Source: Paramoeba atlantica
Lineage: Eukaryota > Protista > Discosea
Assembly (NCBI GenBank): GCA_977017575.1
Contig: CDRNVI010000037.1
Span: 62,001 to 126,000, forward strand
DNA length: 64,000 nucleotides
Direction: 5' to 3'
The notes beneath the pieces were generated by a model that saw only the letters and a list, made by a program, of their open reading frames with translations, searched no databases and was not told the origin of the DNA. Shown here one piece after another: positions 2,011 through 58,542 of the stretch; the first letter of the stretch is position 1, and every line of letters starts with the position of its first letter. The position numbers and the translations under genes are program-made.

Positions 2011-2475
2011 AAATGCGTCTGCTTTTCTGATTGCTTTCTTCGTATTCCGGGTTTAAATTTTAGAATGTGATGTTTTTTAGAGCACAGTTTATTTCATATT
2101 TGCTATTTCAGTTGGTATGAAGAAAGGCTTTGAATTAAGAAACACATTTTAATAAGACCTACTTTTATGTTTATGAGATTTTCGGCTTAATTCATTGAGT
2201 TTATCTTATGTTAAAATTGATCAATACGTACATAGTTCGATGCTACTAAAGTCCATTTTGTATTTTTGTTCTGCCAATCCTAACAAATACTGTATCTCGC
2301 ACCCTTCTATTAGATTGCACGAAAACATTTACGTAACACCATTTCACTCCTTCTTATCACCAAAGAAAACAAATATGGTATCTCACGTACACCAAACAGG
2401 TGACCACAAAACCAAAACTCCTTTGCAATTATCCCTACAACCCTTTTTCTTCCATTTCTCACCTCTCCCTCCCCC

Positions 2476-4245
2476 ATGCCCTCCCCCCACACCATCCCCG
2501 TACCCCCCAACGCCCCCCTCTCCGAGGGTCTCCGCGCCATCTCCCTCGTCGTCGCGGCCAGCCCCGAAGGCGGGATTGGAAAAAACAACAACCTCCCCTG
2601 GGACCTCCCCTCCGACCTCAAACACTTCCGTACCCTCACCTCCACCCTCTCCTCGAAATCCCTCGAGGGGATCAAACAAAACGCCGTCATCATGGGACGT
2701 AAGACCTGGGAGTCCATCCCGGAGAAATACCGACCCCTTCCCCATCGGGTTAATATTGTCATTAGCTCCACGCTGACCCCCACGACCCCCTCACCGAATA
2801 ACGAAGAGAATACAAAACAAAATGGAATAAAGTCCAACGAAAGGGAATTTAAGAATAGTGAAATGCAACAAAATCAAAAGGAACCGACAAGTTTAATGGA
2901 AAGCGAAGGCAAGCTGAAGAGCCCTACAGAAAATACACAAGACCAAAAGGCAGGAGTGAAAGGGGATGGGGGAGTAAAGGAGGATGGGGAAGTGAAAGAG
3001 GGCAAGGGATCGATAGATCAGAAGGATTCGAAAGCGCCCAATAAATCCCTCTACATTGTCCCTACTCTCCACGATGCCCTACGCCTCACCATCTCCCCGG
3101 ATCTCCGGGCCTCCATCGACCACGTCTTCATCATCGGCGGGGCCTCGCTCTACAACGAGGTGTTGGACCCGCGAGGGGCGTTCTTCCCCTATCTCTCCTG
3201 TGTGCATCTCACCCGTGTAGGGGACGAACTGCCCTGTGACATTACCGTCCCGCGGCTGTGTGAGCAGAGCTGGGAGGGGGAGGCCGGAGCTAACGGGTTC
3301 GTGCTGCAGCAACCCGTGCCGGAGGTCACCGAGCCCCACAACGGGATTGTGGTGAAATTCCAAAAATGGGTGAAATCGAATCCTCAGGAAAGTCAGTACT
3401 TAGCTCTGATTCGGGAGATTTTGGAAAAGGGGGTGGATAAGGGGGACCGGACGGGGACGGGGACCCGGAGTGTGTTTGGGGCTCAAATGCGGTTTGATTT
3501 GGGGAATGGGAGGCTGCCGCTGCTGACGACGAAGCGGGTGTTCTGGCGTGGGGTCGCGGAGGAACTGCTGTGGTTTATTCGAGGGGACACCGACGCGAGA
3601 CACCTCGCGGAGAAGAAGATTCATATTTGGGATGGGAACGGCTCCCGGGCGTATTTGGACTCCATTGGGTTAAGTTCCCGGGCGGAGATGGATTTAGGTC
3701 CGGTTTATGGGTTTCAGTGGCGACACTTTGGGGCAGAGTACGAGACCTGTGGGAGTGATTACGCCGGGAAAGGGGTGGACCAGTTAAAGGGGCTAGTGGA
3801 GAAAATCAAACAAAACCCCAATGACCGGCGATTGTTGATGTCGGCGTGGAATCCGGTCGCGATTCCCGAGATGGCACTTCCCCCATGTCATGTGTTGTGT
3901 CAGTTTTATGTCGCCAACGATGCGTTGAGTTGTCAGCTCTACCAACGGAGCTGTGACATGGGGCTCGGGGTGCCGTTTAATATTGCCTCCTACGCTTTGT
4001 TGACCATATTACTGGCGAAGGCTACGGGACTTCGCTGTGGGGAGCTCATCCATACTCTAGGCGATGCCCATGTGTATCGGAATCACATAGAGCCCCTGGA
4101 GGAACAGCTGCGTCGAACCCCTCGGTCGTTTCCCTATCTTCACTTCAAGAGACACCACGAGACGTTGGAGGACTACGCATTTGAGGATTTCGAGCTCGTA
4201 GATTACAACCCCTATGGGATGATCAAAATGGAAATGGCAGTGTAG
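2476..4245 (+). CDS. DHFR-TS: Bifunctional dihydrofolate reductase-thymidylate synthase
   Basis: DHFR motifs [37 protein letters not shown]; TS motifs [48 protein letters not shown]. Short kinetoplastid-type junction. Confidence 0.98.
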
Positions 4246-5331
4246 GGAATGAAAGGGGAGGATTAGGCGAAACGTGGGGATTTGTAAATTTTCTTCTTTG
4301 TACATCAATTGCATTGAATTAATAGAGATTTCCGTACATGCGTTTTATGTTTTGCCACCATGTATGTGGTGGGTTGTGTATATCTAGAATTTGTACAGTA
4401 TTCTATTTTGGATTGTCCCCGGTGACTGCGACGTACATGAGTTGCGCATTTCTTATTTTAGAGAGTTCTTCTTTTGAAAACATTAGCACAAATACTGCGC
4501 ACAATACTGTGTAAAGGAAGGTCTGTCCCTTTATAATATTTCGGAGCAGATTCTTATGCATGTATGTTCGTTTAAACTGGTTTACTTCTAAGAGGCTGTA
4601 TAAGCTGAATCATAGGCTGATTAATGTCCTCAGAAATACATTGTTTGATCAGAATGGTTTGATTTGAAACACATATTGGATGGACCTCACACAAAGTGAT
4701 GTCTTTTACTGATACCTCCCTTTGGTTAAAAGAAATATTTTGTTTAGAAAACTGGGGTATATGCAACTTCGCTTGATTGTTGAGAGCCATCACATTACAT
4801 AACGAAACCTCTTACCGAAATACAGAAATTTTTTGATATCTGACATAGTACTGTTCATACGTTTTTTACTTTTCAAAAGTTTTTTGTTATCCAAAATTTG
4901 TTTTTCCATTTCAGGATGCTTAGTGATGTAGTTTACGATCATAAGTTTGCTCCCCACTGAAACGCGATTGCAGACGAACTCCAAAGCGTAAACTTTTAGA
5001 AAGGGCTCATTCCTCCCTAAAATACCCTTGGGGATGTGATGTCAAGTTGGCTAATCCTTCTGGTTACTAATTACAAAGAAGCAAAGTCAATATCCTTCGC
5101 TACGTTCGATTTTCAGGCTCAAGAAGTGAATGAGCTGGAAATCGAAGGAATCGAGCTGGAATCGATCGTGTAAATTTACGCACCGCCATCGAACTGGACT
5201 TCTAAAAACTTTTCAAACGACACGCGTCATAGAAAATGCGAAGAAGAGTTTTCGAAAGCGATACAGTGTTGGAATCCAAGAAAATCGGTGGGGATTAAGT
5301 TTTGCAAAAAGTCGTAATGACTTTCTTATCA

Positions 5332-6775: not shown

Positions 6776-7379
6776 ATGTGTGACGTTCCGGCTTCAAGGC
6801 CGCGCCTGGCTAAGATTCGAGGCACAGCTCTTCCGCAAGAGTACGATCTAGAGAGACTCGTTGCCGGTATTCCCGATCCACATAGCTCCTGGACGGCAGA
6901 CACTCCGGTTTGTGAGTGGGATGGCGTAATATGCATGTCGCGCGGCACACCCACATCACTCCGTTGGTCATCGCATGCCTCGCGTATGAAAGGTGGAACT
7001 GTGTATTTGCAGTTTATGCCGGTTTCCATTCAAACGTTTTCTGTACCGAGCTGTGGGCTTTTCGGGGGAAGTTACATTCGGATTACTTCCTCGGCATCTT
7101 AATTATCTTTATCTCCAAGAAAATAAGTTTACTGGAGAATTACAAGTTAGCGACCTTCCGGACATGATTATTGAGCTCAATATTGTAAAAAACCAATTTC
7201 ATGGCAAGGTTGACCTCGTTTCAGATTTAAATGAAATTGTACCGAAAAGTTTGATCGCCATGCAAGTAGGCCAAAATGTGGATCTTTTTGGTACAATCAA
7301 TGTTGCTTTGCTTCGAAGATGGAAATCATCCTTTATGTACGATGTCAGTGGGACAAGCATTAGACGAGTAACGAAATGA
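6776..7379 (+). CDS. LRR family copy 1 (frameshift in G5 run at 7064-7068)
   Basis: RLAKIRGTALPQEYDLERL..W...PVCEWDGVIC cap, then LRRs that continue in a second frame (GEVTFGLLPRHLNYLYLQENKFTGEL). Confidence 0.8.
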
Positions 7380-8921: not shown

Positions 8922-9469
8922 GCGCAAATATTACTTTAAACCTTTACCGCGCTGAAAATTGTTGAAATCGTAATTCTTTAATCCAAATGTGTGGCTCAGC
9001 ATGGCATACATCATTCTACGGTAACTTTCTAGTGTCCAAAATAATAATTTTTGCCTTTCCCCTGTATATTTGTAATTTCCTTATTCGTTTCTTTTATAAT
9101 ATGCTTAGTGTTTATTCCTTATTGCGTATTATATCGTAAGCGCACATGTAGTATCGCGCACTAGATACATCATGAAATTACTGTCTATAAGTAAATCACC
9201 GTAACATTTCATGTTCGAAATATACAGTAGATATCCCCAGACGTTTTTATTGATCCGTAAATCATTTGTTTGTTTTTTAGACCTCACCCTTTAAAAAAAT
9301 ATTAGTATTATACTATTTCGTACTATAGGCGGTTACATTTTTGTTGGGTGTCAGGCGTCACTTTCTTACCATAATGCATTGGCGGCGTGATACGTTCTGT
9401 TTGAATACAAAAAATATTCAAAACCGTATTTTAGAGAGAGCTATTTATTTAATAAGGAAGGACTCTTCC

Positions 9470-10072
9470 ATGAATGGTATTTTCGCGGCTGAATTAGCAC
9501 CTGCTTGCGCAGCCAAAGTACGCGGCGCTGCAGTACCGCCGGAGTATAATTTAGTGAGACTCACGCAACGCATCGAAAATCCGAAAGAATCATGGCACAC
9601 GAATACACCTGGATGTGAGTGGGATTTCGTTTCCTGTAATGAACAAGGCGATGTGATCAACATTACGTGGATTTTCATTGGCTTACAAGGATCACTTTGT
9701 TGGGAGTATTTACCAAAACAACTTATGATTCTTAGCCTTACGGGAAATCACCTTAAAGGGGAAATACCGCTCTCGGATATGCCTTATGACCTCGAGTTCA
9801 TAAATATGGGAGAAAATGAGTTTGGCGGCAGCATCGAGTTACAGCATCTTCCGCCGACCTTGGAATATCTTTATTTGCATGACAATTTATTTGATTGTCA
9901 GATTAAGTTTACCTTATTGCCGAAAAGTCTCCTTGAACTCGTTTTGCACAAAAACGGTAAACTGCGAGGGGAGCTTGATGTTTCATTACTACCGGAGTCC
10001 TTAAAGTACAATATGCGCAATACAGGAATCACCGCTTTGAACGGCCCTACTCGCCGAGGATTTTCTTTGTAG
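9470..10072 (+). CDS. LRR family copy 2
   Basis: AAKVRGAAVPPEYNL..W.TNTPGCEWDFVSC cap plus LP..L..L.L..N.L.G repeats. Confidence 0.85.
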   Translation: MNGIFAAELAPACAAKVRGAAVPPEYNLVRLTQRIENPKESWHTNTPGCEWDFVSCNEQGDVINITWIFIGLQGSLCWEYLPKQLMILSLTGNHLKGEIPLSDMPYDLEFINMGENEFGGSIELQHLPPTLEYLYLHDNLFDCQIKFTLLPKSLLELVLHKNGKLRGELDVSLLPESLKYNMRNTGITALNGPTRRGFSL

Positions 10073-10904
10073 CCTGCCTCAATGTCAAATTCTTTTTATG
10101 TCAATAAAGGCGCAGACTTCAGATCATATATTTTTTATAGTGTACAGGGGGGACATTTGTCTGTGTAATACTAATCTGGAGAACATTAATCTGTGTGATA
10201 TTAATCTGTGTGATATTAATCTGTGTTAACTCGAAAATATTTGGTCCGGCAGAAATCTGTGCTAAAAAAACAAAAATGCGCCGCAGGCGAAATTTTCCTG
10301 TTTTAGTAAATGTTTTTTTTCTCTTTTCTTGATTTTTAATTGTAAAAATGGACAAATTTGTGAAAAAAGATCATAGCCCCGGCATAGAGGGGGGGCGTTT
10401 ATCCGTGTAAAATCTGTGAGATCATAGTACATATTTTTATACGCCACATAGTACCTATTTTTATGCACTGTATAGTTCTTTCTATACTATTCAGGTATCA
10501 TCCTCGATCAGAATAACTTAAGATGATGTTCCGATAGTTTACAACCGTCCATCCATAGTATTTCTCTCCTGCAAATAACAAACCGTTAGTCGTACAATCT
10601 GTTTTTCGGAGCAAAGAACTTCACAAAACAACAGATCACTTTCGTCCGTCTTCCTCAAACCTCTCCAATTGCCAAAACTGAACATCGATATTTACATGCA
10701 ACGGAACATCGCAGAACTCTCGGGATGTAAACATGGAACATCACAAACCACCCCTTTGTAAATATTTTTGCAGCAAATCCTTTCACATTCCTAGACTACT
10801 CCAACTCTGAGCTTATCCGATCATGTCATCATCTCCTTTCACTTTTATTATTCCTACAGTAAGTCCGTGTTGCATCCCTTTCAAAAATCCTTTTGACACA
10901 TTCT

Positions 10905-12005
10905 CTCGTAACAACGCGAGGTCGTCAGTCCCGGGTAATAGGGTGGGTGGATCCAATGCAAGTACCGACTGTCATCAACACGATGTCAGTCACTCTCAGA
11001 CGTCAAGCCATCTCCGTATGGTGAATGCGGAATAAACGGATGAGTCTCCCGTGCCACACAAGGTGGTACATGTTCTCGCAACAATGCGAGGTCGTCAGTC
11101 CCGGGTAATAGGGTGGGTGGATCCAATGCAAGTACCGACTGTCATCAACACGATGTCAGTCACTCTCAGACGTCATGCCGTCTCCGTATGGTGAATGCGG
11201 AATAAACGGATGAGTCTCCCGTGCCACACAAGGTGGTGCGTGTTCTCGCAACAACGCGAGGTCGTCAGTCCCGGGTAATAGGGTGGGTGGATCCAATGCA
11301 AGTACCGACTGTCATCAACACGATGTCAGTCACTCTCAGACGTCAAGTCGTCTCCGTATGCTAAATGCGGAATAAACGGATGAGTCTCCCGTGCCACACA
11401 AGGTGGTGCATGTTCTCGCAACAACGCGAGGTCGTCAGTTCCGAGTAATAGGGTGGGTGGATCCAATGCAAGTACCGACTGTCATCAACACGATGTCAGT
11501 CACTCTCAGACGTCATGCCGTCTCCGTATGGTGAATGCGGAATAAACGGATGAGTCTCCCGTGCCACACAAGGTGGTGCGTGTTCTCGCAACAACGCGAG
11601 GTCGTCAGTCCCGGGTAATAGGGTGGGTGGATCCAATGCAAGTACCGACTGTCATCAACACGATGTCAGTCACTCTCAGACGTCAAGTCGTCTCCGTATG
11701 CTAAATGCGGAATAAACGGATGAGTCTCCCGTGCCACACAAGGTGGTGCATGTTCTCGCAACAACGCGAGGTCGTCAGTTCCGAGTAATAGGGTGGGTGG
11801 ATCCAATGCAAGTACCGACTGTCATCAACACGATGTCAGTCACTCTCAGACGTCATGCCGTCTCCGTATGGTGAATGCGGAATAAACGTATGAGTCTCCC
11901 GTGCCACGCAAGGTGGTGCGTGTTCTCGCAACAACGCAAGGTCGTCAGTCCCGGGTAATAGGGTGGGTGGATCCAATGCAAGTACCGACTGTCATCAACA
12001 CGATG
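10905..12005 (+). repeat. 170-bp tandem array, about 6.5 copies, with a 340-bp higher-order dimer
   Basis: gtcgtcagt recurs at 10921, 11091, 11261, 11431, 11601, 11771 and 11941 (170-bp spacing). Variants alternate A/B. Confidence 0.97.
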
Positions 12006-12713
12006 ATGTTTCTGTACCTTGTATTTGTTTTCTTAAACTGTATCAACAACATGTCCGTTAATCTCACTTCCCCGCGGAATGTTGACAATGCGTTGCCGGA
12101 CCTCCCTCGAGCTTCCGCTGCGTACAGACGCAAACACTGCATTTCGTCCACAGCAGATCTCGACCCGTTAAGATACGACTTCTCACTGATCTGCGCTGGA
12201 CATATTTCCCCGACATTAAGGCTGTCAGCCAATGGTCCATAGTTAGAGAAAGAATCCCATCCGGGCAAGGTGCGGAAATAGCGATTACAAAACTATTAAA
12301 TAAGCATCAGCACACGCCCTGGTAGCTGAACACGCCAGGTCACGAGGAAAGAACACCCCCACACCACCTCCCTGCACCCAAACTGGGTTTCGATGCATGC
12401 AGATCCGACCCTGAACCTAGGAAAGACGTATTCCACCCCAAGCACGCTCAATAAAGCAGCCGTGAAGGCCTTATAGGGTAGAGAAATATGTGGATTGAAA
12501 CACATAACAATAGAGCTCATAAGACAGAAGGAAAGATCACCAAGCGCTGAACCAACGGGATACGAAAAACCAAGCAGGACAGAAGAATCTCCGCACAAAA
12601 TCGCTGCTCCACGAACGTCCCTGAAAGGTAAACCTGATGAATACAAAGGACCATGCAAACACCGCTGCTTGAGAAAACTCTCCTGTGTGCACAAGTGCTG
12701 CAAAATACGTATA

Positions 12714-13465
12714 CAGGGGTGAAAACTGCCATCTGGGGGGGTCTAAAATTAGCAAAAACTTTTCAATTTCGGAAAATAATACCGCATTCGAGAGCTCTCG
12801 CAGAGTTGTATGTCTTTGCACTGGTAGCTGCTGACATATCAAATTAGAACTCCAAATACCGAATAGGCCAAAAAAGCAAATTGTCACTTAAAGAATAATA
12901 AAAAATCTCAGATATTTTTAGGAGGCATTATTTTAAAACCCGTGTTGCATCCACAACATGCACCCTTCTTTTCTACGATGATTCTACAACGTATTCCGAA
13001 GTTTTTAAACTTATTATCAAACTTATCTTTGTCTTTTGCCTGAAGTTTATCGTAAAAAACATGAATCGTTCCACCCAGAGTTTCACAGTTCCCTAGTGGA
13101 CCCAAACACTTTGGTAAGTCCGGGAATAAGACTGTATTTTCTCGAAGTCGGCCACAAGAAGTAATCTTTGGTGTTCTTTAATCTTTCCTGGCAAAGTATA
13201 AGAACGGGCGTTCGAAACACCATGAGAATTCCTTGAGCGAACTCGCTTTTGGGGCGTAAAATGGGGCAAAAATGAAAAATTGCCATATTTTCACAAGAAA
13301 AAAAACATGTTTTTTTCTCATCGGGTTAAATCTTTCAAGCCGAGCGTTCCGAATACGCCAAAGACATACAACTCTGCGAGATCTCTCCAATGCGCTATTA
13401 TTTTCCAAAATTGGACAATTTTTACAAAATTTAGACCCCCCCCCAGATGGAAGTTTTCACCCCTG
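12714..13465. mobile_element. Tc1/mariner-type MITE with TA target duplication
   Basis: TA|caggggtgaaaactgccatctgggggggtctaaaatt ... aatttagaccccccccccagatggaagttttcacccctg|TA. A related right end lies at about 44010-44048. Confidence 0.9.
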
Positions 13466-13577
13466 TACTTGTATGTACCGTTGCCAAGTGTGGACGCTCA
13501 GGACAACTTATCAACGAGAGCACCACCACCTGATGTCCAAGCAGGAACCGCAAACCCCACCATCCTCGGGTCATGTG

Positions 13578-13720
13578 AGAAGGAAGAGGAAGAAAGAGGA
13601 AGAAATCAATCTTGATCTTTCAAGATTAGATTCACAAGAAGAATCAGAGATCCTCTTTCTTCCTCTTTCTTCCTCTTTCAAGACTAGATTCTTTCAGAAT
13701 CTTGATCTCCTCATCATGTG
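13578..13720. mobile_element. Small purine/pyrimidine foldback insertion with 7-bp duplication TCATGTG
   Basis: tcatgtg at 13571-13577 and 13714-13720. Removal fuses ..PPSSGHV to PPSGATPRN.. in one frame. Confidence 0.7.
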
Positions 13721-16306
13721 CCACCCTCTGGCGCGACTCCTAGAAATGCAACACTTCACTCACTGAACACCGCACGAGTAGAACCATGCCGTCACCGATG
13801 CTCCGCCAAGTTATGCTGTCTGCACAACTGTTGCAAAATATATGGACCACTCAGGTGCAATGAACCCCTCGTCCGACCTTCTCCTCTCCCCCCTGTTTCG
13901 CACACTACGGAAGGTCGAGTTCCATCGTGGGATGAAACAAACGAAAAGGAACGCCTTCGTCTGCTTGAACAACACAAATCCATAGCAGGAGGGAAAATGT
14001 GTCTAAAGCTTAACGACGACCAATGGAAAGCCGTCGAAAATAAGGCATACGATGCATGCCGAAGAATACTACATCCCATAGTAGACACCCCGGAAATCGC
14101 CGTCAAAAACGCAGAACTCTTGGGGGTCCTCTATGGCGGTGGCGGTCTATGAAATTGCACATGAAATAAATCCCACCAAAGGTTTCCTCACACGATCGAA
14201 TCGCGGACACGCCCGATTTAAGCACCGACCTCTTTCCTCTGAAAATGCAGCTCATCAAATGGCAAAACACATACGCAGCCAAAAGAAATCACTACGCTAC
14301 ACGCACGGAACGGACCGCCAAGAGCTCCGTCGCTGCATTAAGGAAAGCGAGAAACTAGAGAAAGTATACTCAGAAGAGGCCAAAGCTCATAAAACACAGC
14401 TAGAGAGGCATTGGGCCCATAGTCATAGTCTAACTAGTATTTTAGTACGTACTAAAATACTAGTAATCGACTAGTACGTACTATGAGATACTACTTTTTT
14501 GGAATGGAAGGATTTTTTTTCTCAGGTATTGCGGCACTCCTATAAAAAATCGTTACTTTTGATCGAAACAGACGAGACAACCTATTTTGCATGGGCATAG
14601 TACAGTATAGAGAACTTTTGCGAGTATTTTCACGGTCGACGTGGAGCTCTGCTTTTAGAGAGGGATGGGGATAACTTAAAGAGGAATGATAACTGCTGCT
14701 CGAGAATTGCTGATGGGGGATTATAACTGCTGATGATGAGGAACCATCGCAAGGTTGCGGGTGTTAAGAATAAGAAGCTGAGATACACAAGGGGTCATAA
14801 GAGGCACCATGAAAATAGTATTTCATAGAGGCGAAAAGAAAATTTTTGTAATACGAATAATAAAACTATGTGAAAAGTTTTACAAAAAAAATAGAAAGGG
14901 GGAATGACGTGTGAATCGTGCCAGTACCTCATTGGTATGCGCGTATATATTACTTCCTCGTATATTCTACGTATATTGCTTTGATATACGTTGATGTATA
15001 TGACGAACAAACGAATCAGGAAAACCATTGTTACCCGGATGGTGGTAAGATACGCCACCTAAAAGAAAAAATCGCCCAGCGGAGTAAACTACATTTCGGA
15101 GTAAACTACAATTACAAAACTACAATACAAAAAGAAACTACATTTCTACCAAATTGTATCAGGAACATCATTTTTAAGCTCACAATTTGATTAATTAAAA
15201 ATAATTCGAACTGATATTAAAAAACTTAATAAATTTGCTCTGATATTAATTCAATTTGAGCCATACTTCTGCGCCACATTAATTATTTGTTTTATGATTT
15301 GTCACTCTTCTTTCGAGAACTGCTCGCCCGGTAAGGTAAAGATCCTTCGTTTCCACGTAAAAACATTTGGGCCGCCACCACGTCTGTCCGGATACGAGCT
15401 TGACGGGAAGTGTACTTCCAGGAAAGCACAGAAAGAACTGAGTCGCACGCCGTTACGAGAGGGGGAGCCATAAATAATGCTGTGCCGCTTCATGAATCGT
15501 GGAGAAACGCTTGGACCCAACTTCGTGCCACCACTGAACATCGCTCATACCACAAGTCCACTCGTAATCTTGGCAAGTCGTATATGCGTCCCACTCCTCT
15601 CGAGTAAAATCAAAAATGTAGGTGTTCCCGTTCCTAGTAAGTCGTTGGCCCGCTGAATTGATAATGGCTCTTTGCCACGAGGTCGGGCGGATAAAACTAT
15701 CCACTCCGGAGAAAACCACATAATACCGGCCCAAATTTTTACATCGTATTCAGAAGCCACTCGTTTGACATGTTTGTTCACGGATTCCACTACTTTCGGC
15801 TCCGAAGAGTCTACTAGCTGACGCAAGGTTGGGTACACTAGGGCAGCCATAGGCTGATCATGCATGTCGGAAAAATTTTCCTGTGCGATGCGTAATGGCA
15901 TGCACTCGTTTAGGAAATCTTTTGCTGCCTTCATTAGATCATTCAAAGGATGTTTGGCAAATATTTCAGCGAGGTCGTGAACAGATTGGGGAGCTCGGAG
16001 ACCTTCTAGTTCACTCTTAATAAAGGATGCGACAGTGGGCATCTGCTCTGATAGGAACTTTATACTCTCAAACTTGTCGGAGATCCAGCGTGTGACCCCA
16101 CCGTGTTTGGGAGACGTCACAGCCCGTACTTTGTGGAAGTGAGCAATAGATTGTTTGAGCAATGTTTTCCCGGTCCGTGCTTCCTATAGGACGAATGCGT
16201 GAATATATTTCTTCTTCTGCAGAAACAAGGGAGTCGTGGATATTTGCCATGCTAGACTCTATTTCACGTCTTGCGACGTTGTTTACGGGAGCCCCATCCG
16301 CCATTA

Positions 16307-17243
16307 TAAACCCCCGCTCACGAAAAGTGACCCCCCTCTTTTTTTTCGTACAAATGTCCGTTTGAGCTGTTTTTTGTTGCATTTTGCAGATCTCAACACA
16401 AGGACTTTGCGCGTGCAGAAATGAGACAAAAAGAAACGAATACTCACAATTTAGAGAAGAATTACCATTTTGTCACTTTTTCGCCCTTCAATCTTATACA
16501 CTCCTTAAGTCGAGAATCAAAACTTAATACTGTTTTGTCGATCACTTTTTGAGTTAAAGAAGACCATGCTTTACATACACATCGGATAAGTGAAGGTTTG
16601 TCCGATGGGGTTTGTTCGTCTACCGCCTCTTGGACCATAGACCAGACGTTTTCTATGGGGGAAAGGTCGGGCGAGTTGGGGGGCCAGTTTCTTAGAACAT
16701 CACTCATTCAATTCTCAATATACTCTTTGGAGGCACGGGCAGTATGTGCCGTTGCCCCATCCTGTTGAAATACACTATTAGGGGGGAAATCTACCTGTTT
16801 TAATGTTTCTATGTACGTCTCACTTGTAATAGATGTGTCATTGTAGATGTCTCACTTGTAATAGATGGTCACAGGACTCAAAGTGTATTCCCCGCTAGAT
16901 TTTTTTTCGTTCAGATATTTTTTGATTATCCTTCTAGAGACGTTAAAATCACGGGATAATTGTTTTATCGGAACACCTTCTGCCTGTCTCATCTTCAAAA
17001 GAACCTTACCACTATCCGTAAGCCCCCCTTTTGGGAGCCGATATGGTGATTTGGTAATTTTTGGAAAAAAAAGTTGAAAAACCAATTAAGTTTTTTGACT
17101 AAATTTTAAAATTTTAAAATGAGCTAAAAACAGCGGGAACGTACAGATCTCGAAATTTTGAACGAAAAAGTGATATGATAACCCACCGACGCCCCCCTGT
17201 GCTAAAAATAAGGGGGGGTCACTTATTCGTGAGCGGGGGTTTA
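16307..17243 (-). mobile_element. Internally deleted Tc1/IS630 element with TA duplication, nested in the hAT-like element
   Basis: TIR taaacccccgctcacgaa(a/t)aagtgacccccc at both ends; HTH fragment 16852-17085; FQQDGATAHT..WPPNSPDLSPIENVW. Confidence 0.9.
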
Positions 17244-18200
17244 TATCGAAGTTTGCAAAGACGAGCATCCGATAGGCAAGAGCGAAGAACTTCCATCGAG
17301 GATTGCGCCATTTCAACTCCATTGAATGACTTGTGTTTCGGATGGTAAATCGGAGGGAGAAGGAAGTTCCGGTCCACGACGTACAAGATTGCGATAAGTA
17401 CGTGTTCATTTAAAACTTTGTCAACCCCCCCCGTCTACCGCCAACCCAAAGAATTTCGCTCCGTCAATGCTGCGCCGAATATCATCCCAAATCATATCGG
17501 CAATCCGACGCTCGCTAAGGTGAAACTCGCGAGGAGAAGGAAGAATGCAAGCAACTTCTGAAGGTGAGACATCAGCAGGGAACTCCTCAAACAGGAGTCG
17601 AACACAACCCAGGAACCCCTCGGTAGATAGATTACTTTGTGCGGCAAAACATGGAAGGGCTTCGGAGATATACTCTTCTAAAGACTTTGGGTTCGTTGTC
17701 TCCGCAGAGTCTTCACTCAAGTCTTAAGATTTCGAGCAGCACTCCTTGTAGTGCTTGTAACACACATTTTCTCCCTTGCTGTGGGACAACCAGCCTCAAA
17801 GATTACATCGAATGTGCTGTGTGTGTCCCATCGCATCGTTTCGGATGCCGGGGACGCTTTTGCGTGCCCAATCAAGGCACAACCGTTCCGAACTTAGGTT
17901 ACACCTCTCGTACACCAAATGTCGTTGGCGACGAAGGCTCGCACAGGACTATGATTTTTAGCAGAGGCCCGTCGGCGCGTGTTTTCCGGAACGGGTGTGG
18001 AAACGTGTTCCGCTGTGTTATCTCTCATATGAAGGGAAAGTCGTGTTTAATAAAATGCAATATTCTAAGTAGACAAGAATGATATGATTTGTATACCACT
18101 GTAACCCAAAGATTAAATTAAATCAGCGTATTATACAAAGCAAAAAGATTGGGGCAACTACGGCGAAACTTATTTTCCAAGAATATGCACTCACCAAAGT

Positions 18201-19029
18201 TGTGGATTTTCAATGTCAGTGCAACAATTTGTCATACTCAGTGCAACAAATTAATAATAATTGTCATACTCAGCGCAACAAAAGGTTAATTTCTACATAA
18301 TACACTTCATATACTAATTTCTACATAATTCAGTTCATTCATGCCAAAGTACAGAAGATTATCTGAAAACAATCGCAAAGATATTCAAACGATGTTTGAA
18401 AGTGGCGCCACGAAGAGGGAAATTGCCCGATCGATTGATAAGTCCCCAAGTACGGTATGTCGTGAGCTGGCACGCAACAGGAAAAGAGGTGGGCAATGGG
18501 AAAAGGGGGCCGTTGAAAACATGAATGGTCTGGTCCGTCAGTATCACACCAAGTCAGATACTTTTGAGGAGTTGACACAGCGCGAAGTTAGTAAGACGGC
18601 CAACAAACTGAACAAACGGCCACGAAAGTGCTTGAAATGATTCTCCCCAAAGAGCTTGGAAGGCCAAATTTTACTATAAAGAGACGGTACTATACATGAA
18701 AGCAGTAAGTTGTATAGCCGTAAGTTGTAAAGCAGTAAAGGTAAAAAGTTTATCTCTTTACTAAAGAAACGCGTTATGTTGTTCCGTCAATATCGATTAT
18801 CCAGGTACTCCTTTTTTCTTCTCCTTACATAATTTTTTTTCTTAATCCATTGTTTCTTTCTTAACATGGCTCATACAATCCCGCGTCCGTTTGTGGTGCT
18901 GTCCGACCGAAAAAACAGTCTTGCACTGAGTATGCGAAAATCCTGACATCCGGAACACACCCATATTTTTCTCATTTTTGTTGCACTGAGTATGACAAAA
19001 AGGTGTTGCACTGAGTATGACAATCCACA
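18201..19029 (+). mobile_element. IS30-family insertion sequence, internally deleted
   Basis: 26-bp imperfect IRs tgtggatt....tcagtgcaaca; AGT 3-bp duplication. ORF 18341-18640 fuses the IS30 HTH (REIARSIDKSPSTVCRELARN) to the IS30 C-terminus (WEKGAVENMNGLVRQY..LNKRPRKCL). Confidence 0.85.
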
Positions 19030-21620
19030 AGTAGTATCTCATAGTACGTACTATAGTACGTACTGAAATACTAGACAGACTACGCATAGTAGATTCACAA
19101 GGAATCCGTGGACAGCAGCATCCGAGTCGTTGGACCGTACATCTACTTCCGTCATCTCCGAGTATCCTGAATGCGATTTACCTACAGTAGAAGAATATTT
19201 TACAGCAGTCACAGCACCTCATGCCGAAGAGCACCGCCTGCCTCCGAATGACGTACTTGGTCCCATACCCATCAACGAAATGACATGGTCTCCACAAACC
19301 GCGCAAGAGGTTGCAGACGCACTAAGCAGCAAAAGAAACGCAAGTTCGCCAGAACGTGACACGATTACAAACGCGCTGCTAAAACGATGTAAATATCTAT
19401 ACCCACGTATAGCGGTCACTTTTAATGATCTTCTGCGCCACGGTATCTGCCCGCCATGTTGGTCCTCCGCCATAGTTAAACTCATTCACAAAGGAGGCGA
19501 CAAGCACACCCCGAAAAATTGGAGACCTATCTCCCGGCAAATTATTCAATAGCATAATCGGACACCAAATTCTGGCACATGCCGTGTCCTCTGGATTCCT
19601 AGATACCACCGTGCAAAAAGGCTTTCTTCCGAAGATGAGTAGTACACTGGAACACACGCAAGTTCTATCCGAAATACTGCAATACTACCGCCAAGACAAA
19701 AGGCAATACTGTCTTACGCAGTTTGATCTCAGCAATGCATTCGGTTCGGTCCCCCACAACATCATCTTCGAGGCACTACGATGGGCAAAAATTTCACCAC
19801 AAATTGTATCCTATGTTGAAAGCATGTACTCACACGCAGAAATGCGTATAAAGTGTGCCGAAGGATTGTCACGCGCAATACCGATACATAGAGGCGTACT
19901 ACAAGGAGATACCCTCTCCCCCATAAGTTTTAACCTAGTGATGGAAACTGTATTACGATACCTCAAGCAATCGTGCCCTCGGTATGGCCTTGACTATCCA
20001 GACACTCCAAGACATTTCCTGAAAGCCTATGTTGACGATCTGACGATACTGACTAGCAGCGACAGCGATATGCAGAGCGCGACGAATACACTTGAAACTG
20101 CACTGAAACGAATAGGACTCTCAATAAACGTAGACAAGAGCCGTACACAATGCATGTCCATGCGCGAAGGTAGCGAGCACCCAGGGTACATGACCAGGAA
20201 ACCGAGAATCATCATCGAAGGCAGAGCTATACCACATATATGTGACCGCGGAAGTACTTTTTTGGGAATGACCATAGCGCCAGGAGGACAACAAGCGAAG
20301 GAACATGGATGTCAGACTAAAAACATGGCTTTGGAATGTCGACGAAAGTCCACATAGCCTCCCCGAAAAACTTTGGATCTAGAATCATATCTCGTCTGCG
20401 CTATATTCTTACTGTTCATCCATGTGTCACATTCAACTTTGTGTTGCGACTGCAGAAACGAGTTACGCGTCACCTTAAGAAATGGATCAACGCAGCATCC
20501 AAAACCTGCACTGAAATTCTATATACTGAACGAGGGTGGAACCTTAAAAGTTTATCCAAGCTGTGGTCCGAATGCTCTATCCTAGCCCTAACACAGATGC
20601 ACAAGTCACGGGACCCATCAATAAAGGCTGCACTACCCCGAATCAAACAAGAAGAAGAAAAGCGATCATCTGGTCATATTCGCCCAAGCGCTGAAGCCCT
20701 TCAACACCTTTATAATGCGCGAAAAGCGCAACAGTTAGCACGTGAACATCACGACTCATATGTCATTAGTCACCTGCAGAGAAGGGCACCAACAGCTGCA
20801 AAATGGTGGAACCTCCCCTCGGAAGCCGATCTGGCTAAAGAGTTCTCCGCAGCCCTAAACGATCTCAATAGTGAAAAACTCTCTCGCTTCGCGGCATCAG
20901 TTCTAACACTAACACCACTGCCATCTAGAACGAATCTTCGGCTCTGGGGCCTACGACGTGCCAATGTATTGTGCCCTATATGCCAGACCGAGCCTCAAAC
21001 CACAAGGCACGTGCTCTCGGGGTGCAAGGAGTCTCTCCGACAAGGAAGATACACCATCCGTCACGACATGCTGCTTGAAGAGCTGGGGAAACATCTACTG
21101 CGGTCGCCGCATACCAAAACAATACACCTTGATATCCCGGGTTTTAGGAATGCCCCGGCCTGGCTCGGCACCCGTGACGACCTACTACGCCCCGATGGGT
21201 TGATTACACTGAAGGATGGAAGTGAGTTCATTATTGAACTCACTGTGCCCTGGGAAGAGAACCAGTCTCAGGCGCACGAGGGCAAATCCCGAAAATATAA
21301 TGCCCTATTTCATGAACGACGCACACTCAACCCTAGGACAAACCTTCTTGTTTTCGAAGTGGGAGCCCGCGGCTCGCTACTTACCTCCTGCCGGACCCTT
21401 AATCTCCTCTTTGACGAGGACACAAAGCTTGCAGAAAATTGTCGGCGAAGTCTGATGCAGACCGCCCTTCGAGGCAGTTTCATTATCTGGCAGAATCGAG
21501 AATCTGCCATGTGGACAGAAGAGCGTATTTAGCGTTTGTAAAAGATGAGTCTGGGGAGCGTCATATGCGCCCCCGGACTTATCTACATATTCTCTGCCTT
21601 ATGAAGGCATGATAAAATAT

Positions 21621-21874
21621 AGTCACTCTCAGACGTCAAGCCGTCTCCGTATGGTGAATGCGGAATAAACGGATGAGTCTCCCGTGCCACACAAGGTGGT
21701 GCATGTTCTCGCAACAATGCGAGGTCGTCAGTCCCGGGTAATGAGGTGGGTGGATCCAATGCAAGTACCGACTGTCATCAAAACGATGTCAGTCACTCTC
21801 AGACGTCATGCCGTCTCCGTATGGTGAATGCGGAATAAACGGATGAGTCTCCCGTGCCACACAAGGTGGTGCAT
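21621..21874 (+). repeat. 170-bp array resumes (about 1.5 copies) after the retrotransposon 3' end
   Basis: agtcactctcagacgtcaagccgtctccgtatggtgaatgcgg.. is the same unit as at 10905-12005. Confidence 0.97.
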
Positions 21875-23120: not shown

Positions 23121-23996
23121 TTAATACGGCACATTTATATTGCATATTGCACAAAATACCTTCCAACAAACGAAGTAACCGAAAAATGCATTTACTCAGG
23201 GACGCAAATGGGTTTCACGTTTGCTCCCGGTGAGGCCCCGGAGTTGCGAGAGGCCTCCATACCCCACAACTACCACCTTCCCCCCTATTTAGCGGGGGTC
23301 GCGTGAGCGACCCCTGATAAATGGGGGGAAAGTGGTAGTTGCTTTGGGGAATATGAGAGGCCGAACGCACGGAGGGGCCGGCCGGTCCAAAAAACCCAGA
23401 TCTTGTTTACTCGTCTGCGACATAAACCGGTGAATGCTGCAAAAAAAATTAAGTTGAGGTGTATATTATGTAATATAAGGTGTATATTATATAATATAGT
23501 TACTATAAACTTTTAAAAACTATAAGAAACTATATTTTTTTGTTTAACTTTTTAAGCTCTCTTGAGCTCACCAACACGCCATAAATACACAGAAAATTCA
23601 TTTGTGTGCGATTTTTCTTGTTTTCAAACCCGAAAATTAATGCCCGAAATATAAGTTACGTGGGGTAATTTCTGCAAAGATTATTTTATTGAAGTGTGGC
23701 GCACGGAGGGAAGTAAGCAAACGGTTGAATGTAACTTTCGTCAGAAGGGGACGTGCCCCAGTCCCATGTGGCCTTGACAAATTGCCTTATGCGAATCTTG
23801 CGTCTCGAACATTTCACTGCATCGCTGTCGCCGTGCAGTGGCTGAAGCCGCCGACCATATGTCTTAGGACTGAACAATTGCTGTTCACAATTTTATGAGT
23901 TTGAATAAATTTTAAGAGTTTGAATAAATTACTATAAATAAATTACTATAAAAAATAAATAACCTACTTTTACGTTGATTTTTTCAATTGTTTCGT

Positions 23997-24599
23997 ATGT
24001 TTGGCCTGCCCTGGAGCGTCTGCGTCAATATTTTTCCCTCTGACACAGGCTCGAGTTCTACTCGACTGGGAAAAGTACGGCACAATTTCCTCCCTTTGGA
24101 GTATAAACTGACGCAACTGGTGGAAAACATTGTCCACCAACCCCCGACATGGGGTACCGAAACCCCAGCCTGTGAGTGGCCAGGAGTTCAATGTGACGCG
24201 CACGAAACCATCACTCGTATTTTCTGGACGTCATTGGGCTTAGCCGGGCCGTTGTGTTGGGATCACCTCCCCGACACACTGGTATACATCGACACCTGGA
24301 GCAATAAACTTTGTGGTACAGTGCCCTGGGCAAGACTCCCGGAGGGACTCGAAACGCTGTCGCTCGTGAGTAATGAATTTATCGGGGTGGTAGACCTGTC
24401 GGCGCTTCCGTCCTCGCTCATGGTCTTAAACCTCGCGGGAAATCAATTCAATGGTAAAGTTGAATTCTCATCTCTACCATTTTCCCTTGATTTTTTGAAT
24501 TTAGATGAGAATTCCGCGCTGGAGGGAGAGGCAGATGTAGCGAATTGCTTACGACGAGTTGCATATACCTGGAAAAATACAGGTATCACAGTAATATAG
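23997..24599 (+). CDS. LRR family copy 3
   Basis: RLGKVRHNFLPLEYKL..W.TETPACEWPGVQC plus LRRs. Confidence 0.85.
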   Translation: MFGLPWSVCVNIFPSDTGSSSTRLGKVRHNFLPLEYKLTQLVENIVHQPPTWGTETPACEWPGVQCDAHETITRIFWTSLGLAGPLCWDHLPDTLVYIDTWSNKLCGTVPWARLPEGLETLSLVSNEFIGVVDLSALPSSLMVLNLAGNQFNGKVEFSSLPFSLDFLNLDENSALEGEADVANCLRRVAYTWKNTGITVI

Positions 24600-39421: not shown

Positions 39422-40759
39422 TTGCTGTCACCCCTATTCAATAGCGCCGTGATTCAAAAAAAAATGCTTTACACCCTATCTAGAAATCTACCCTTGCATT
39501 TCTTAGTACAGTGCCACACACTATCCTCTAATTCCATTTCTTTTGGTGATGAGTGTGTCCTTTTTCCACTGAAGACCCTTCTCGTGACAAGCCCGTGGCT
39601 TTGAAGCCACTGCTCGCTATGCTTCCGTCCGGCGTGATATACGGCTGAGGGTGAACTTTCTTCGACAAGCGAACCCCCGACACCCCTGGCATACCATAGA
39701 AAATAACGGAAAAAGGGTATACAATAGTCATATACAATATTATCTACGTAGATAATGGCCTTTTGTCGAAAGGAAAAATGTCAAGCTAAAAAGTCATAAG
39801 AAAAGCGAATTTTCCTTTACCTCCACCCAAAAAATTGTCGAATCCGCCGCTTTCCGTATCTACCCCAACAACAAAAAGTGTATCGAAAGGGAGCAGAAGC
39901 TTGTTTAACAACGATAAAAAAGGGCGCCGCGAACCGATTTTTTTTCGGTATATATATTACGTACTCAACTTTTACGTAACAATTACGTATATATTACGTA
40001 CGAATATACGGTATTTTATTTTTTCGGTAAATAAGGTATACCGAAACCGATTTTTTTTCTTTCACATTATTTTCCAGGCCCCCCCTTGAATGGGGCCTTT
40101 TGCCCAAAATCGGCGTCCTATTAAATAGGGGGAGATAGTAATAAAACAGGGTTGCGCAAGTTTATAGTTACAGTAGATAAGAAAAATGGGTTAAACTGAA
40201 CTAATATTCGCAATTTTGCAAATTTTTACAGAAAAAATCTCTTTTTTCTCGTACTTTAAGCTTTTCTCAACTTGTACATGCTTACTTCTTACAAATAAAC
40301 GCATGCACGGCATTGCTTCAAATTTACTAAAACTTGAAACAATGAATCACCCCCGTTACACTTCAAACTTCCGGTGCATACCTCTGCTTATGCTTGTATT
40401 CGGTACCCTTCTTTTACAGCTTCCTACCTGTCCCGCTTCAGACGCTTTTTGGCCATAGAGCTCATTTTTGTTGCAAACGAGAAATCTCGCTCTCATAGCA
40501 AAGCACTACGCTGACATTTTACCTTATAGCCGGGTTTGTAAACCCGGTTTGTACCGGATAAGTTTAAGATTTATTATCAAAATACAGCAAATATTGCCGC
40601 GCTCTTTTGTTGCTCTTAAAAACTCTCAACATTTAAAAAAAGGAGTGCGCTACTGTACTACCACTCCGAGTATTGAGTCCAGCAATTGAAAAGCGTTCAA
40701 TAAAATAAGTTTATAGAATTGTCCACCGAGTCGTCCAGTAGAATTATCGTAAAATTTTA

Positions 40760-41413
40760 ATGATAACATTATTTTTCATGTCAGACACGCCATCAAGGCC
40801 ACGCCTGGGTAAAGTACGTGGTCACAGATTACCTCAAGAATACGATCTCGCACGGTTTTTCCGGGGCATTGAGGAGCCGCCCAAAACGTGGTCCACTGAA
40901 ACACCTGCATGTAGGTGGAGAGGCGTCAGGTGCAATAGTCAAAGCAAAATAAATAGAATCGACATTTCTTGCACGCGAAGCAAGGGCACAATTGACTGGG
41001 CACACAGTCCCGAGACAGCCATTACTATCAATCTTCCTCAGAACACCCTTTCCGGGTCTGTGCAATGGGAAAGTTTGCCTCCCTATCTGGAAGAACTACG
41101 ACTTCACAACAACGCTTTCGAAGGAGAAATCCATCTAGGGGACATACCGAGATCGATGCAGAAAATTAGGCTAGACTACAATAAATTTTCCGGGGAGGTA
41201 GATTTCTCGAACGTTCCCCGTGGTCTTGTAGAGTTGGTCCTTTCCCATAACCGCGGACTCACGGGTTCGGTAGACGTGACGAAATTGTCCATGGCATTGC
41301 GTGCGGATCTTTCACGTTCGCAGAACTTGTGTTGGAAAGGGACGCAAATCGTGGAGAAAAGTTTTCTGGACATGTACGTTAGCAAAAACAGTTTCTTGGG
41401 TACGCATTTGTGA
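40760..41413 (+). CDS. LRR family copy 4
   Basis: RLGKVRGHRLPQEYDL..TPACRWRGVRC plus LRRs. Confidence 0.85.
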   Translation: MITLFFMSDTPSRPRLGKVRGHRLPQEYDLARFFRGIEEPPKTWSTETPACRWRGVRCNSQSKINRIDISCTRSKGTIDWAHSPETAITINLPQNTLSGSVQWESLPPYLEELRLHNNAFEGEIHLGDIPRSMQKIRLDYNKFSGEVDFSNVPRGLVELVLSHNRGLTGSVDVTKLSMALRADLSRSQNLCWKGTQIVEKSFLDMYVSKNSFLGTHL

Positions 41414-41887
41414 GTACTAGCACGCATGCAGTACAGCATTGCATATTACTGTATACAGTGACCCCCGTTTAAGTTCTTAAGGAAAATGAGGCGCGCTTGA
41501 ACGTGGGGTACAGTTTAAAGAACTTATAAACTTATCCATAAATCTTTAGGATGCGATGTCTTTTTTTGTATTTTCTTGTGGTGTTTACTAAAAGTGTTTG
41601 CCATATGAGCACTAAATACGTATATAAAGCACTAAAATATGTATAAAAATTTTGATAAAGACACTGAACGTATGAGTCGTGAAAAAAAGCATGGGTCTTC
41701 AAAAAAAGAGGAGCTAGGAAATTGGTTTGAAACGGATGCTTAGCGTTTGAAAATTGATACCATGACTGTTTCTTAGTTCTCCAGGTACTCTATTTACATG
41801 AGTAATTGTCTACTTTTTGATACGTACGTTTACACACCCTACTCAGCATCCTTTGATTGGATATTCTACATTGTAAATTTATAGCGA

Positions 41888-42517
41888 ATGGATTTTTCCA
41901 GTGAGGCATTCGAAACGCAAAAGCGAGCGACATCCGGATCAGCGACGCGCCTAGGGAGAGTCAGCGCTGCGTCGCATTTTCAAGATCAGCTTTTTCAATT
42001 CACCTGCAACGTGCATCCTGTTCATCCCACGTGGGATATAAAGAGACCTGCGTGTGAGTGGAACGGTGTGAATTGTGACGAGCGGGGGAATGTCGTGGAA
42101 CTGATGTGGGCGATTCGTAACTTAGCGGGTAAGCCCTGCTGGTCATCGTTACCTGCCATGTTGCAAAAGATTTACCTGAACGGTAATCATCTCTCTGGGT
42201 CATTACCGTTTGAAGATCTTCCGGGGCAGCTGGTGGAACTGCACGCAAGCGGAAATTTGTTTTCGGGTGCACTCGATTTCACGCAGCTGCCGCCCACAAT
42301 GTGTTCCATAAATCTGGATCGCAATCGGTTTGATGGGGAAGTAAATCTTAGTCAGCTTCCGAATGGTCTCACAATATTGTGTTTAGATTACAATCAAAGG
42401 TTGAGTGGTCAAATTTCCAAAGAACATTTACCAAAGACTCTTGTGCATTGTTCACTGCTGGGGACAGGCATCGAATGGGGTGACAGCCATAGTTCGTCCA
42501 TGTGTACTACTATGTGA
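41888..42517 (+). CDS. LRR family copy 5
   Basis: RLGRVSA..W.IKRPACEWNGVNC plus LRRs. Confidence 0.85.
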   Translation: MDFSSEAFETQKRATSGSATRLGRVSAASHFQDQLFQFTCNVHPVHPTWDIKRPACEWNGVNCDERGNVVELMWAIRNLAGKPCWSSLPAMLQKIYLNGNHLSGSLPFEDLPGQLVELHASGNLFSGALDFTQLPPTMCSINLDRNRFDGEVNLSQLPNGLTILCLDYNQRLSGQISKEHLPKTLVHCSLLGTGIEWGDSHSSSMCTTM

Positions 42518-45870: not shown

Positions 45871-46147
45871 TCACTTCTACTGGTGATCACTTTTTTAACA
45901 CTTTAGCAAGAATAACTTATCACACCTGTGACCTTCTAACATACCTGTGACCTCGTACAATACCGGGGTGTATATTAAGCCGGACCCGTTTATTTGTTTT
46001 CCTTAATTTATCAGTGGACTGCAAACCATGGATTCTAATAATTTATTGGAACCATTGGTTTATTATAACCATTGGTTTATTATAAACCAATACTTTATCT
46101 ATATAACTTACCTCTAACTTTCGTAAATTTGTTTTGGCATCCACCAC

Positions 46148-46987
46148 ATGAGCATAACAATACTTGCGATGTCCCTCTCCGACGCTCAGAAGCCGCACGC
46201 CCCGCGAAATTCGCACAACGAGGGAAATGAAGAAGGCAAGCACAATGTTCGAATAGGAAGGGTGGGAGGTTCGAATTTACCTCAGGAATACGAGCTCGCA
46301 CGGTTTGTTGAATTAGTAGAAAATCCACACCCTACATGGAACGTATCGACACCGGCGTGTGAATGGAAAGGTGTAACTTGTGAGGATGGCCTACATGTCA
46401 CTAAGATTGATTGGGAAAATGTTGCCGAGCTGAATAGCCTATCCGGGTCCATTCAATGGGAGTGGCTCCCCCAGAAAATCTTAGTGGTTGATGTCGCAAA
46501 ACAGAAATTGTCTGGAAATGTCCCTCTCAAGACGCTTCCTTCGAAATTACGTGTTTTAAATTTGGTTCTAAATCAATTTTCGGGCGGTTTGGATTTACAA
46601 TTTTTGCCAAACACATTAGAGAAGGTTTGGGTGGATTACAATAATTTTCAAGATGGTGTGGACTTGACGCAGTTGTCTCAGAGCTTGTTAGCGTTAACTC
46701 TTAGTAGCAATAAGTTATCCGGGCATGTCGATCTTGTTAGTTTGCCTAGCGGCATGACCTGTCTCAATCTATCGCGAAATTTGTTTACTGGACCAGTTCA
46801 GCTGCGCCGGTTGCCCGCGACGCTGAAAGCACTGTACCTTAACAACAATCACTTCACTGGGTTAGCAAGGCTTGATAATCTTCCAGAAAGCTTGGAAGTC
46901 TTGTGGATGCACGACAATGACGAACTCGCCTCTGAAGGCAATCCTCTTGATATCGATCACACTCTAGCGCTGAGCATTACCCTCTAA
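46148..46987 (+). CDS. LRR family copy 6 (longest copy)
   Basis: RIGRVGGSNLPQEYEL..TPACEWKGVTC plus about 8 LRRs. Confidence 0.88.
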   Translation: MSITILAMSLSDAQKPHAPRNSHNEGNEEGKHNVRIGRVGGSNLPQEYELARFVELVENPHPTWNVSTPACEWKGVTCEDGLHVTKIDWENVAELNSLSGSIQWEWLPQKILVVDVAKQKLSGNVPLKTLPSKLRVLNLVLNQFSGGLDLQFLPNTLEKVWVDYNNFQDGVDLTQLSQSLLALTLSSNKLSGHVDLVSLPSGMTCLNLSRNLFTGPVQLRRLPATLKALYLNNNHFTGLARLDNLPESLEVLWMHDNDELASEGNPLDIDHTLALSITL

Positions 46988-51830: not shown

Positions 51831-52252
51831 TGTGGGGAAGGGGGGGTAGAAATGGGAGGAAAGAAATGGGGGTGGTTGTACAAAGATTGACTGAAATGAT
51901 GTATGAAAGTCATTGTGGCTACTAGAGACAATTCTATCAGGGAAGTTCCTGTACATATTGTACCCCGAGTAAAAAATTAGCTCCTGTACATAAAACATTT
52001 TGCTTGTACATTTTACATGTACATGTAGATGAATATTCTAATCGTGATGAGTTACCATACAATAAGTTCAAATCAAAATATATGGAAATACTGGTGACGA
52101 TAGGTAAGCATCCCGCTTCATTGCGTAAATCTATAATTCGCCAGGTATGCTTGTATAAAAACGCATACTTTTCTGTCTCATGCGTGTACAGGCGTGTACA
52201 GGATTGACGATTCATTTTTATCAACTAGCCTTCTAAATATTTTTACCATTTC

Positions 52253-58043: not shown

Positions 58044-58542
58044 AAATGTTTCAAAAAGAAAGGGGGTTTTAGAAGGAAAAGAATTACTCGCTTGTGTAAA
58101 TGTTTGAACAGCGTATGGGTGGGGTTCGGTTTGCAATAAATTCGGTGGGAAAGTGGAATAAGAAATAGAAAGGACTCGAATGTATTAAGATGGGGAGGAA
58201 ACAGCAGATGTGACTGCAAAAAGTGTTATGAAATTATTTCATAAACGCTATTCCAAATAGCGTCAAAGTAGAGACCAATGTTGTAAATTTTAAAGCTCGA
58301 AAAATTGTAGTGGATAAAATAGAGATGAAACAATCTTATTTTTCTCTTTCTTGTTTTACGATCATTCGAAACTTTTTCGAACTACCAAACTGACAAGCTA
58401 TATTCATTCGGGAGATTATTGAACGTCCTTTATGCATTGAATATGATGAAATGATGCAGAACTTTATGATTAACTTTTTTAACACATTTAATATACTTTT
58501 TTCCTTGTCCTTCATTTTTCTTCATTTTGAGGAACGCATATC

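Follow-up and report, generated by a model that had tools for sequence, protein, structure and literature searches.

Among the described retrotransposons without long terminal repeats (non-LTR), the closest system to the one considered here is R2 (solved proteins 9nl3, 9dou and 8gh6), which is specific for 28S ribosomal DNA (rDNA). R2 combines a single open reading frame (ORF), with N-terminal Cys motifs, a reverse transcriptase (RT), a CCHC knuckle and a PD-(D/E)XK-type endonuclease, with a structured 3' untranslated region (UTR), 5' truncations and insertions that show no target duplication or a small deletion. Other elements with a restriction-like endonuclease (RLE) are CRE1/CRE2, SLACS and CZAR, which occupy the spliced-leader genes of trypanosomatids, and Utopia, NeSL-1 and Dong/R4, whose targets are U2 small nuclear RNA genes, SL1 genes, microsatellites or rDNA. 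Kojima et al. (PMC4640811) describe RLE lineages as often target-specific and as homing to repeated sequence families. Here, we compare with these systems an element at positions 12006-21620 of a 64,000-nucleotide stretch of the Paramoeba atlantica genome (the window; positions 62001-126000 of contig CDRNVI010000037.1, here C37), in which it interrupts an array of 170-bp tandem repeats. The element belongs to a family that likewise has the R2 features listed above. Our analysis of the assembly (45.7 Mb, 248 contigs) shows that it is one old, dead, nearly full-length R2-like copy, inserted once into a low-copy array. It likely represents an insertion outside leucine-rich repeats (LRRs) by a family that homes partly to LRR-coding sequence, and not a parasite dedicated to the 170-bp repeat.

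The array that received the element is split into two parts, neither assigned to a strand:

10904-12005: left part of the 170-bp tandem array, 6.5 units, ending ..acacgatg (Tandem Repeats Finder)
21621-21874: right part of the 170-bp tandem array, 1.5 units, starting agtcactctc

Tandem Repeats Finder described the left part with a period of 170 bp, 6.5 copies and 95% matches. The left junction reads ..caacacgatg|ATGTTTCTGTACC.. and the right one ..GATAAAATAT|agtcactctc.., and the uninterrupted unit at the insertion point is caacacgatgTCagtcactctc. Comparison of the intact unit with the two junctions therefore indicates that 2 bp of the target (TC) are gone and that nothing was duplicated, in agreement with the initial annotation of this DNA. 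Resumption of the array in register is no sign of specificity, since any single insertion into an array gives this pattern. The unit is also found at a second locus, which was assembled twice with 98% identity (C39:203899-206633 and C40:642772-644996) and contains 16 and 13 unbroken units, respectively, with flanks unlike those of the window array and no element. Units of the two loci differ at ~5-7% of positions, and about 39 other 170-bp units in the assembly are without the element. Since the arrays of the second locus are element-free, the repeat is host sequence, as had been stated initially, and most units are unoccupied. The occurrence of units on both sides of the element could suggest that they are its own terminal repeats or transduced sequence. 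The element-free array refutes this; in addition, the unit is missing from every other family copy, and left and right parts complete each other to a single unit that lacks 2 bp.

A single insertion event accounts for all the junctions found. The sole other copy above 88% identity lies on C39 and is 99.75-99.84% identical to the window copy from the unique sequence on its left, through junction and element, to the unique sequence on its right, the only differences being the number of array units and a 940-bp insertion. Because flanks and junction are shared, the C39 copy represents the same event as the window copy, on another haplotype or through recent duplication. Read data were available as contigs of independent runs, among them X1, X2 and X4 (the last possibly RNA). 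Contigs of X1 contain both element-array junctions and those of X2 the 5' one; besides the ends of this element, only the four array flanks abut units in the X1 and X2 contigs, and no empty allele of this locus was seen in the reads. The proposal that the element is site-specific for the 170-bp unit, forming a new element-target pair, consequently loses its basis, with one event, an empty second locus and no other junction in the assembly or X1.

The remaining traces of the same lineage lie elsewhere. We refer to the lineage of the window copy as subfamily A and to its closest sister as subfamily B (labels of this analysis). A search with the last 621 bases as query recovered three further lineage-A fragments, at C49:224049-224248 (94% identity), at C39:696977-697082 with a twin on C40 (92%), and at C43:573119-573386 with a twin on C19 (88%). 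All three are 5'-truncated and have the GAAGGCATGAT terminal hairpin of the window copy. Their flanks are unrelated and contain neither a 170-bp unit nor a common motif. No B copy lies in the 170-bp repeat either.

The relatives of the window copy show where the family does insert with preference. It prefers, partially, one codon register of LRR-coding repeats (LPxxLxxLx|LxxNxFxG), most strongly in subfamily B, where the break falls between codons 18 and 19 of the 23-residue LRR at six of the eight sites of insertion. The B 3' flanks at loci L004, L006, L007 and L009 open with L-x-x-N-x-F-x-G codons, and those at L003 and L005 are degenerate repeats in the same phase of the 69-nt period. The 5' junctions were read for 11 copies. 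Both junctions were read in nine copies from at least six subfamilies (c87, L004/L087, L091/L119, L092/L120, L098/L121, L026/L122, L030/L123, L029/L124 and L085/L125), and none of the nine has a target duplication. In most of them, by our reading, the host frame ..L-P-x-x-L-x-x-L-x | L-x-x-N-x-F-x-G.. continues across the element; c87 and L091/L119 are in degenerate or shortened repeats, where the breakpoint is placed to about one codon only. Over the whole family, 18 of ~75 independent 3' junctions fall in LRR arrays, all 18 in one phase of the 69-nt repeat. A motif-based test gave 16 of 76, the background in this LRR-rich window being 1.25% of positions (P about 2e-15). The LRR insertions are independent, since their flanks differ while the elements are near-identical. 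About three-quarters of the family insertions, intact full-length copies included, are at non-LRR sites with equally clean junctions. For two sister-family insertions, the assembly, in which their 5' flanks are single-copy, showed no empty allele.

These observations place the family beside, and apart from, the described systems. Unlike R2, it has no rDNA target, and its homing to a protein-coding LRR register is partial. Utopia, NeSL-1 and Dong/R4 are likewise RLE elements that home to repeated families; however, their targets are RNA genes or microsatellites, with most copies in the target, whereas here one copy sits in the 170-bp repeat and the preferred target is a coding repeat that holds about a quarter of the copies. 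In the searchable literature, we found no report of a non-LTR element homing to a protein-coding repeat. The initial annotation had proposed a search for other copies and their flanks, taking locations elsewhere to speak against its claim; elsewhere is where they were found, with three lineage-A fragments at unrelated sites and B at LRR codons.

It could still be argued that a true specificity for the 170-bp unit arose in subfamily A, whose sole surviving copy would be the one in the window. The precise insertion with a 2-bp loss and no duplication, the multicopy array as target, the target specificity frequent among RLE lineages (PMC4640811) and the fact that A differs from B most in the N-terminal region would all fit. 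We nevertheless regard this as quite improbable: the event is single, the ~39 other units, the whole second locus included, are free of the element, no other junction occurs in the reads, the three lineage-A fragments are at unrelated sites, and the closest relatives home to LRR codons. A version in which A gave up the LRR register, the homing site of its sister with 88% identity, for the 170-bp unit, maybe an array of small structured-RNA genes, so that the window holds the last relic of the pair, is very improbable in our judgment. If true, a single RLE lineage would have changed its target recently, and the change could be traced to its N-terminal Cys motifs.

Several points weigh against our interpretation of 12006-21620 as a non-LRR insertion of a partly LRR-homing family. 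An extinct specificity of subfamily A would be compatible with a single near-full-length copy, and with just 2 bp lost the junctions are as clean as those that R2-type elements leave when they insert site-specifically. Divergence between A and B is greatest in the N-terminal Cys-motif region (78% versus 85% nucleotide identity, with the second motif missing). This is the likely DNA-binding part, and its divergence is the only hint of a different specificity for A. Furthermore, the three 5'-truncated lineage-A pieces could stem from unusual insertions, tandem arrays may be under-represented in the assembly, and the mechanism set out below is carried over from family resemblance.

The target sequence itself does not resemble the preferred one. 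Position-weight matrices were built from 7 upstream and 16 downstream real half-sites, and the possibility that the 170-bp site mimics an LRR target was rejected with them, as it ranks 86-311 among the 340 unit positions (both strands), with negative scores versus +10 to +25 at real sites. The LRR register is thus present at insertions of the relatives and absent at that of the window copy. The insertion point lies within a 10-bp inverted repeat that is perfect except for one mismatch (gactgtcatc aacac gatgtcagtc), in its right arm. This position, the dissimilarity to the LRR target and the truncated 5' head, where an ATG beside the target GATG resembles the short junction duplications at other 5' ends, would agree with an endonuclease-independent capture, in which a hairpin-prone inverted repeat broke spontaneously and took up the cDNA, leaving the site uninformative about the endonuclease. 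We consider such a capture unlikely. Since about three-quarters of the family insertions are at non-LRR sites and equally clean, relaxed cleavage explains the site just as well, and sequence alone does not separate the two.

For the family as a whole, integration would proceed by target-primed reverse transcription, as in R2, a mechanism suggested by its architecture, 5' truncations, variable tails and lack of duplications. The endonuclease would nick the target and cDNA synthesis would be primed from the nick, with the RT engaging the conserved 3' UTR hairpins; the second strand would then be cut at a point nearly facing the first nick. Recognition of the target DNA probably falls to the N-terminal Cys motifs. 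The window insertion would have arisen by relaxed endonuclease cleavage, or by capture at a break in the 10-bp inverted repeat. After integration, the copy lost its coding capacity and took four DNA-transposon hits, and it is present in both assembled copies of the locus.

The assignment of the element to this type was made mainly through its relatives. With the C-terminal 403 residues as query, more than 100 genome matches were obtained, many in open frames of 1500-1860 amino acids. Subfamily B is the nearest to the window copy (88% amino-acid identity over these residues). Two B copies, at C87:278125-282865 and on C71, are 99.4% identical over 4741 bp and have ORFs of 1550 and 1570 amino acids. 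RVT_1 was detected in the intact sister (E 1e-32) and in the window copy at 19584-20357 (E 6e-27), and Pfam gave only RVT_1 and a weak zf-RVT on the 1550-residue ORF, with no apurinic/apyrimidinic (APE) endonuclease. The best solved relatives of the B C-terminal 886 amino acids are the R2 proteins 9nl3 and 9dou (E about 7e-33 to 1e-32). A single alignment with 9nl3 extends over RT, CCHC knuckle and endonuclease, the motifs of the latter two matching column for column in the pairs (sister/9nl3) C..C..H..C, RHD/RHN, RPD/KPD, ELTVPWE/VDVTVRYE and KSRKY/KVRKY; LINE-1 ORF2 matches the sister in the RT alone. The window copy retains the residues of the sister, with FTRNPW upstream of the RT and CPICQTEPQTTRHVLSGC, RHD, RPD, ELTVPWE and KSRKY downstream. 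Its C-terminal piece alone has no Protein Data Bank match at E < 0.01. The RVT_1 match and the alignment of the sister with 9nl3 thus uphold the earlier recognition of a plus-strand, R2-like RLE element with RT, F..NPW, CCHC and RHD/RPD/ELTVPWE motifs.

The ends of the elements consist of a leader-like head and a short A/T-rich tail, with no LTRs. Full-length elements (L057 with L005 at C87:278125-282865, L003 with L058 on C71, and the 5' junction loci L119-L126) begin with GATAAAGATACAGTTTCTGTACCTTGTTG, which resembles the 3' part of the kinetoplastid and diplonemid spliced leaders. The 24-base core of this head occurs 878 times in the genome (at most 2 mismatches), against 0 for the reversed control. 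Presumably, the host has a kinetoplastid-type spliced leader, as do the hosts of CRE1/CRE2, SLACS and CZAR. These elements have the RLE type in common with the present family; the difference is that here a spliced-leader-like sequence heads the element at dispersed sites, with no spliced-leader gene array as target. Such a head also distinguishes the family from R2, as does its N terminus, which has two to three CX3CX6CX3CC motifs with no Pfam match and not a C2H2/Myb region. Three of these motifs are found in the N-terminal 664 amino acids of B, where Pfam detected nothing. At the other end, the family has a conserved ..CTCT-stem-loop-stem-ATGA followed by variable short A/T-rich tails. Pairing of the terminal hairpin is kept in 17 subfamilies through differing stem sequences, for example, GCCTT/AAGGC, ATCTT/AAGAT, GCAGT/ACTGC, GTAGAA/TTCTAC and AGTGAT/ATCACT. 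Copies truncated at the 5' end also occur in the family, as do short duplications where the 5' end meets the target. Outside this genome, the nearest proteins come from unnamed metagenome ORFs with ~30% identity, and no trypanosomatid name appears among them (both statements refer to the best 120 of 702 matches). From these sequence comparisons, we assign the family to the RLE-type, R2-like non-LTR retrotransposons, in which it is an undescribed lineage; literature searches yielded no earlier account.

Alignment to the intact 4741-bp B element resolved the inserted block into the following parts:

12006-21620, plus strand: whole inserted block, a decayed RLE retrotransposon (subfamily A) with four nested insertions of elements with terminal inverted repeats (TIRs)
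12006-12710, plus strand: 5' end, with a truncated spliced-leader-like head (ATGTTTCTGTACCTTG..), an N-terminal ORF remnant and the first Cys motif (CKHRCLRKLSCVHKCCK)
12711-13467, no strand assigned: nested insertion 1, a 757-bp element with TIRs of ~108 bp (TACAGGGGTGAAAAC..) and at least 40 genome copies
13468-14422, plus strand: ORF remnant with the Cys motif CRHRCSAKLCCLHNCCK; the counterpart of sister positions ~772-1467 (second Cys motif) is largely lost
14423-19084, no strand assigned: nested insertion 2, a TIR element with a 5-bp CATAG duplication at its flanks, holding a Cys-rich ORF (17627-18079) and two more insertions
16306-17245, no strand assigned: nested insertion 3, a 940-bp TIR element inside insertion 2
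18194-19030, no strand assigned: nested insertion 4, an 837-bp TIR element inside insertion 2, with an IS30-type HTH_38 ORF remnant (18341-18640)
19085-21532, plus strand: frameshifted RT - CCHC knuckle - RLE coding region, broken up over three frames, with open pieces at 19067-19549, 19476-20354 and 20321-21529
21533-21620, plus strand: 3' UTR with two hairpins (~21547-21580 and ~21594-21611) and the short tail ATGATAAAATAT

In this alignment, 12019-12706 corresponds to B 34-771 with 78% nucleotide identity, and 13717-14422 and 19085-21619 correspond to B 1468-2172 and 2168-4739, each with 85%. The window copy is old and dead, as its frameshifts, internal loss and four nested DNA-transposon insertions demonstrate. 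Three nested insertions had been counted initially; the fourth brings them to 12711-13467, 14423-19084 and, within the latter, 16306-17245 and 18194-19030. Likewise, the Cys-rich ORF pieces first ascribed to the element are partly its own, at ~12477-12719 and ~13706-14149, while that at 17627-18079 is part of a nested DNA transposon. The two hairpins reported in the 3' UTR were recovered by folding its 88 nt (-37.7 kcal/mol, z = -7.0 versus shuffles), the terminal one being that kept in the 17 subfamilies.

Two of the nested elements deserve separate mention. The 940-bp TIR element (16306-17245) is not in the otherwise identical C39 copy, has copies with 99-100% identity elsewhere and reaches more than 30 genome copies at 90-100% identity; it is therefore a recently mobile non-autonomous DNA transposon. 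The 837-bp element (18194-19030) contains HTH_38 (E 2e-13), and a longer copy is found at C3:577344-578796.

By itself, the locus offers nothing out of the ordinary, a satellite with a dead transposon in it, and we advise against retaining the proposal of a new specificity. It is of use as a contrast case for an undescribed R2-like family, of which intact, near-identical copies insert at one codon boundary of LRR genes, with no duplication and in several subfamilies. The homing is partial, and a copy with 88% identity over the C-terminal 403 residues can occupy DNA of a wholly different kind. Partial homing and differing sites matter for the use of such proteins as programmable site-specific integrases.

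As to the nature of the 170-bp unit, the initial view that it is not a recognized rRNA, spliced-leader RNA, U2, U6, 5S or tRNA agrees with our searches: no Rfam family matched at the gathering threshold or at E <= 10, and ARAGORN found no tRNA. Two candidates were considered. A C/D-box small nucleolar RNA on the minus strand found no support: TGATGA and CTGA lie 49 nt apart there, yet complementarity of the unit to small-subunit (SSU) rDNA, to which the comparison was confined, is not above that of shuffles, and the neighbouring genes are on the opposite strand. Derivation from LRR-coding sequence was rejected, as tblastn with nine LRR proteins of the window gave only E >= 0.07. Run X4 yielded only a collapsed 200-base contig of the unit, of the second-locus type, which is no proof of transcription. 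Upstream of the arrays, ~350 bp are 76% similar between the loci (window 10457-10795 versus C40:642415-642758 and C39); given this similarity, the arrays are part of an older duplicated segment.

Other observations concern the relatives and the assembly. At L011, L079 and L113, from different subfamilies, the 3' ends abut ..A|AGATACAGTTTCTG.. of a leader-headed non-coding unit (GTTGGTACATTTT..CCCGGAAACGGGCA hairpin), which represents either tail-to-head nesting or a second landing site. L112 (C2:379176) and L113 (C12:566606), possibly one locus assembled twice, belong to the most distant subfamily (42% identity) and end with ..ATGATTAAATGA followed by a long (TG)n tract; a third copy, L110, is without the tract, which may be a microsatellite association. 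Eleven dispersed SSU rRNA genes were found on separate contigs (C143, C149, C161, C170, C172 and C177), spaced by up to ~100 kb and not clustered in tandem; more than one organism may be represented in the assembly. Finally, the window contains at least nine small plus-strand genes of one family, with an N-terminal ..LPxEYxL..W..TPACxWxGVxC cap followed by 23-residue LRRs (6990-7376, 9329-10069, 23979-24596, 40742-41410, 41885-42514, 46127-46984, 52229-52882, 58531-59148 and 59500-59985), and the 170-bp array sits between two of them.

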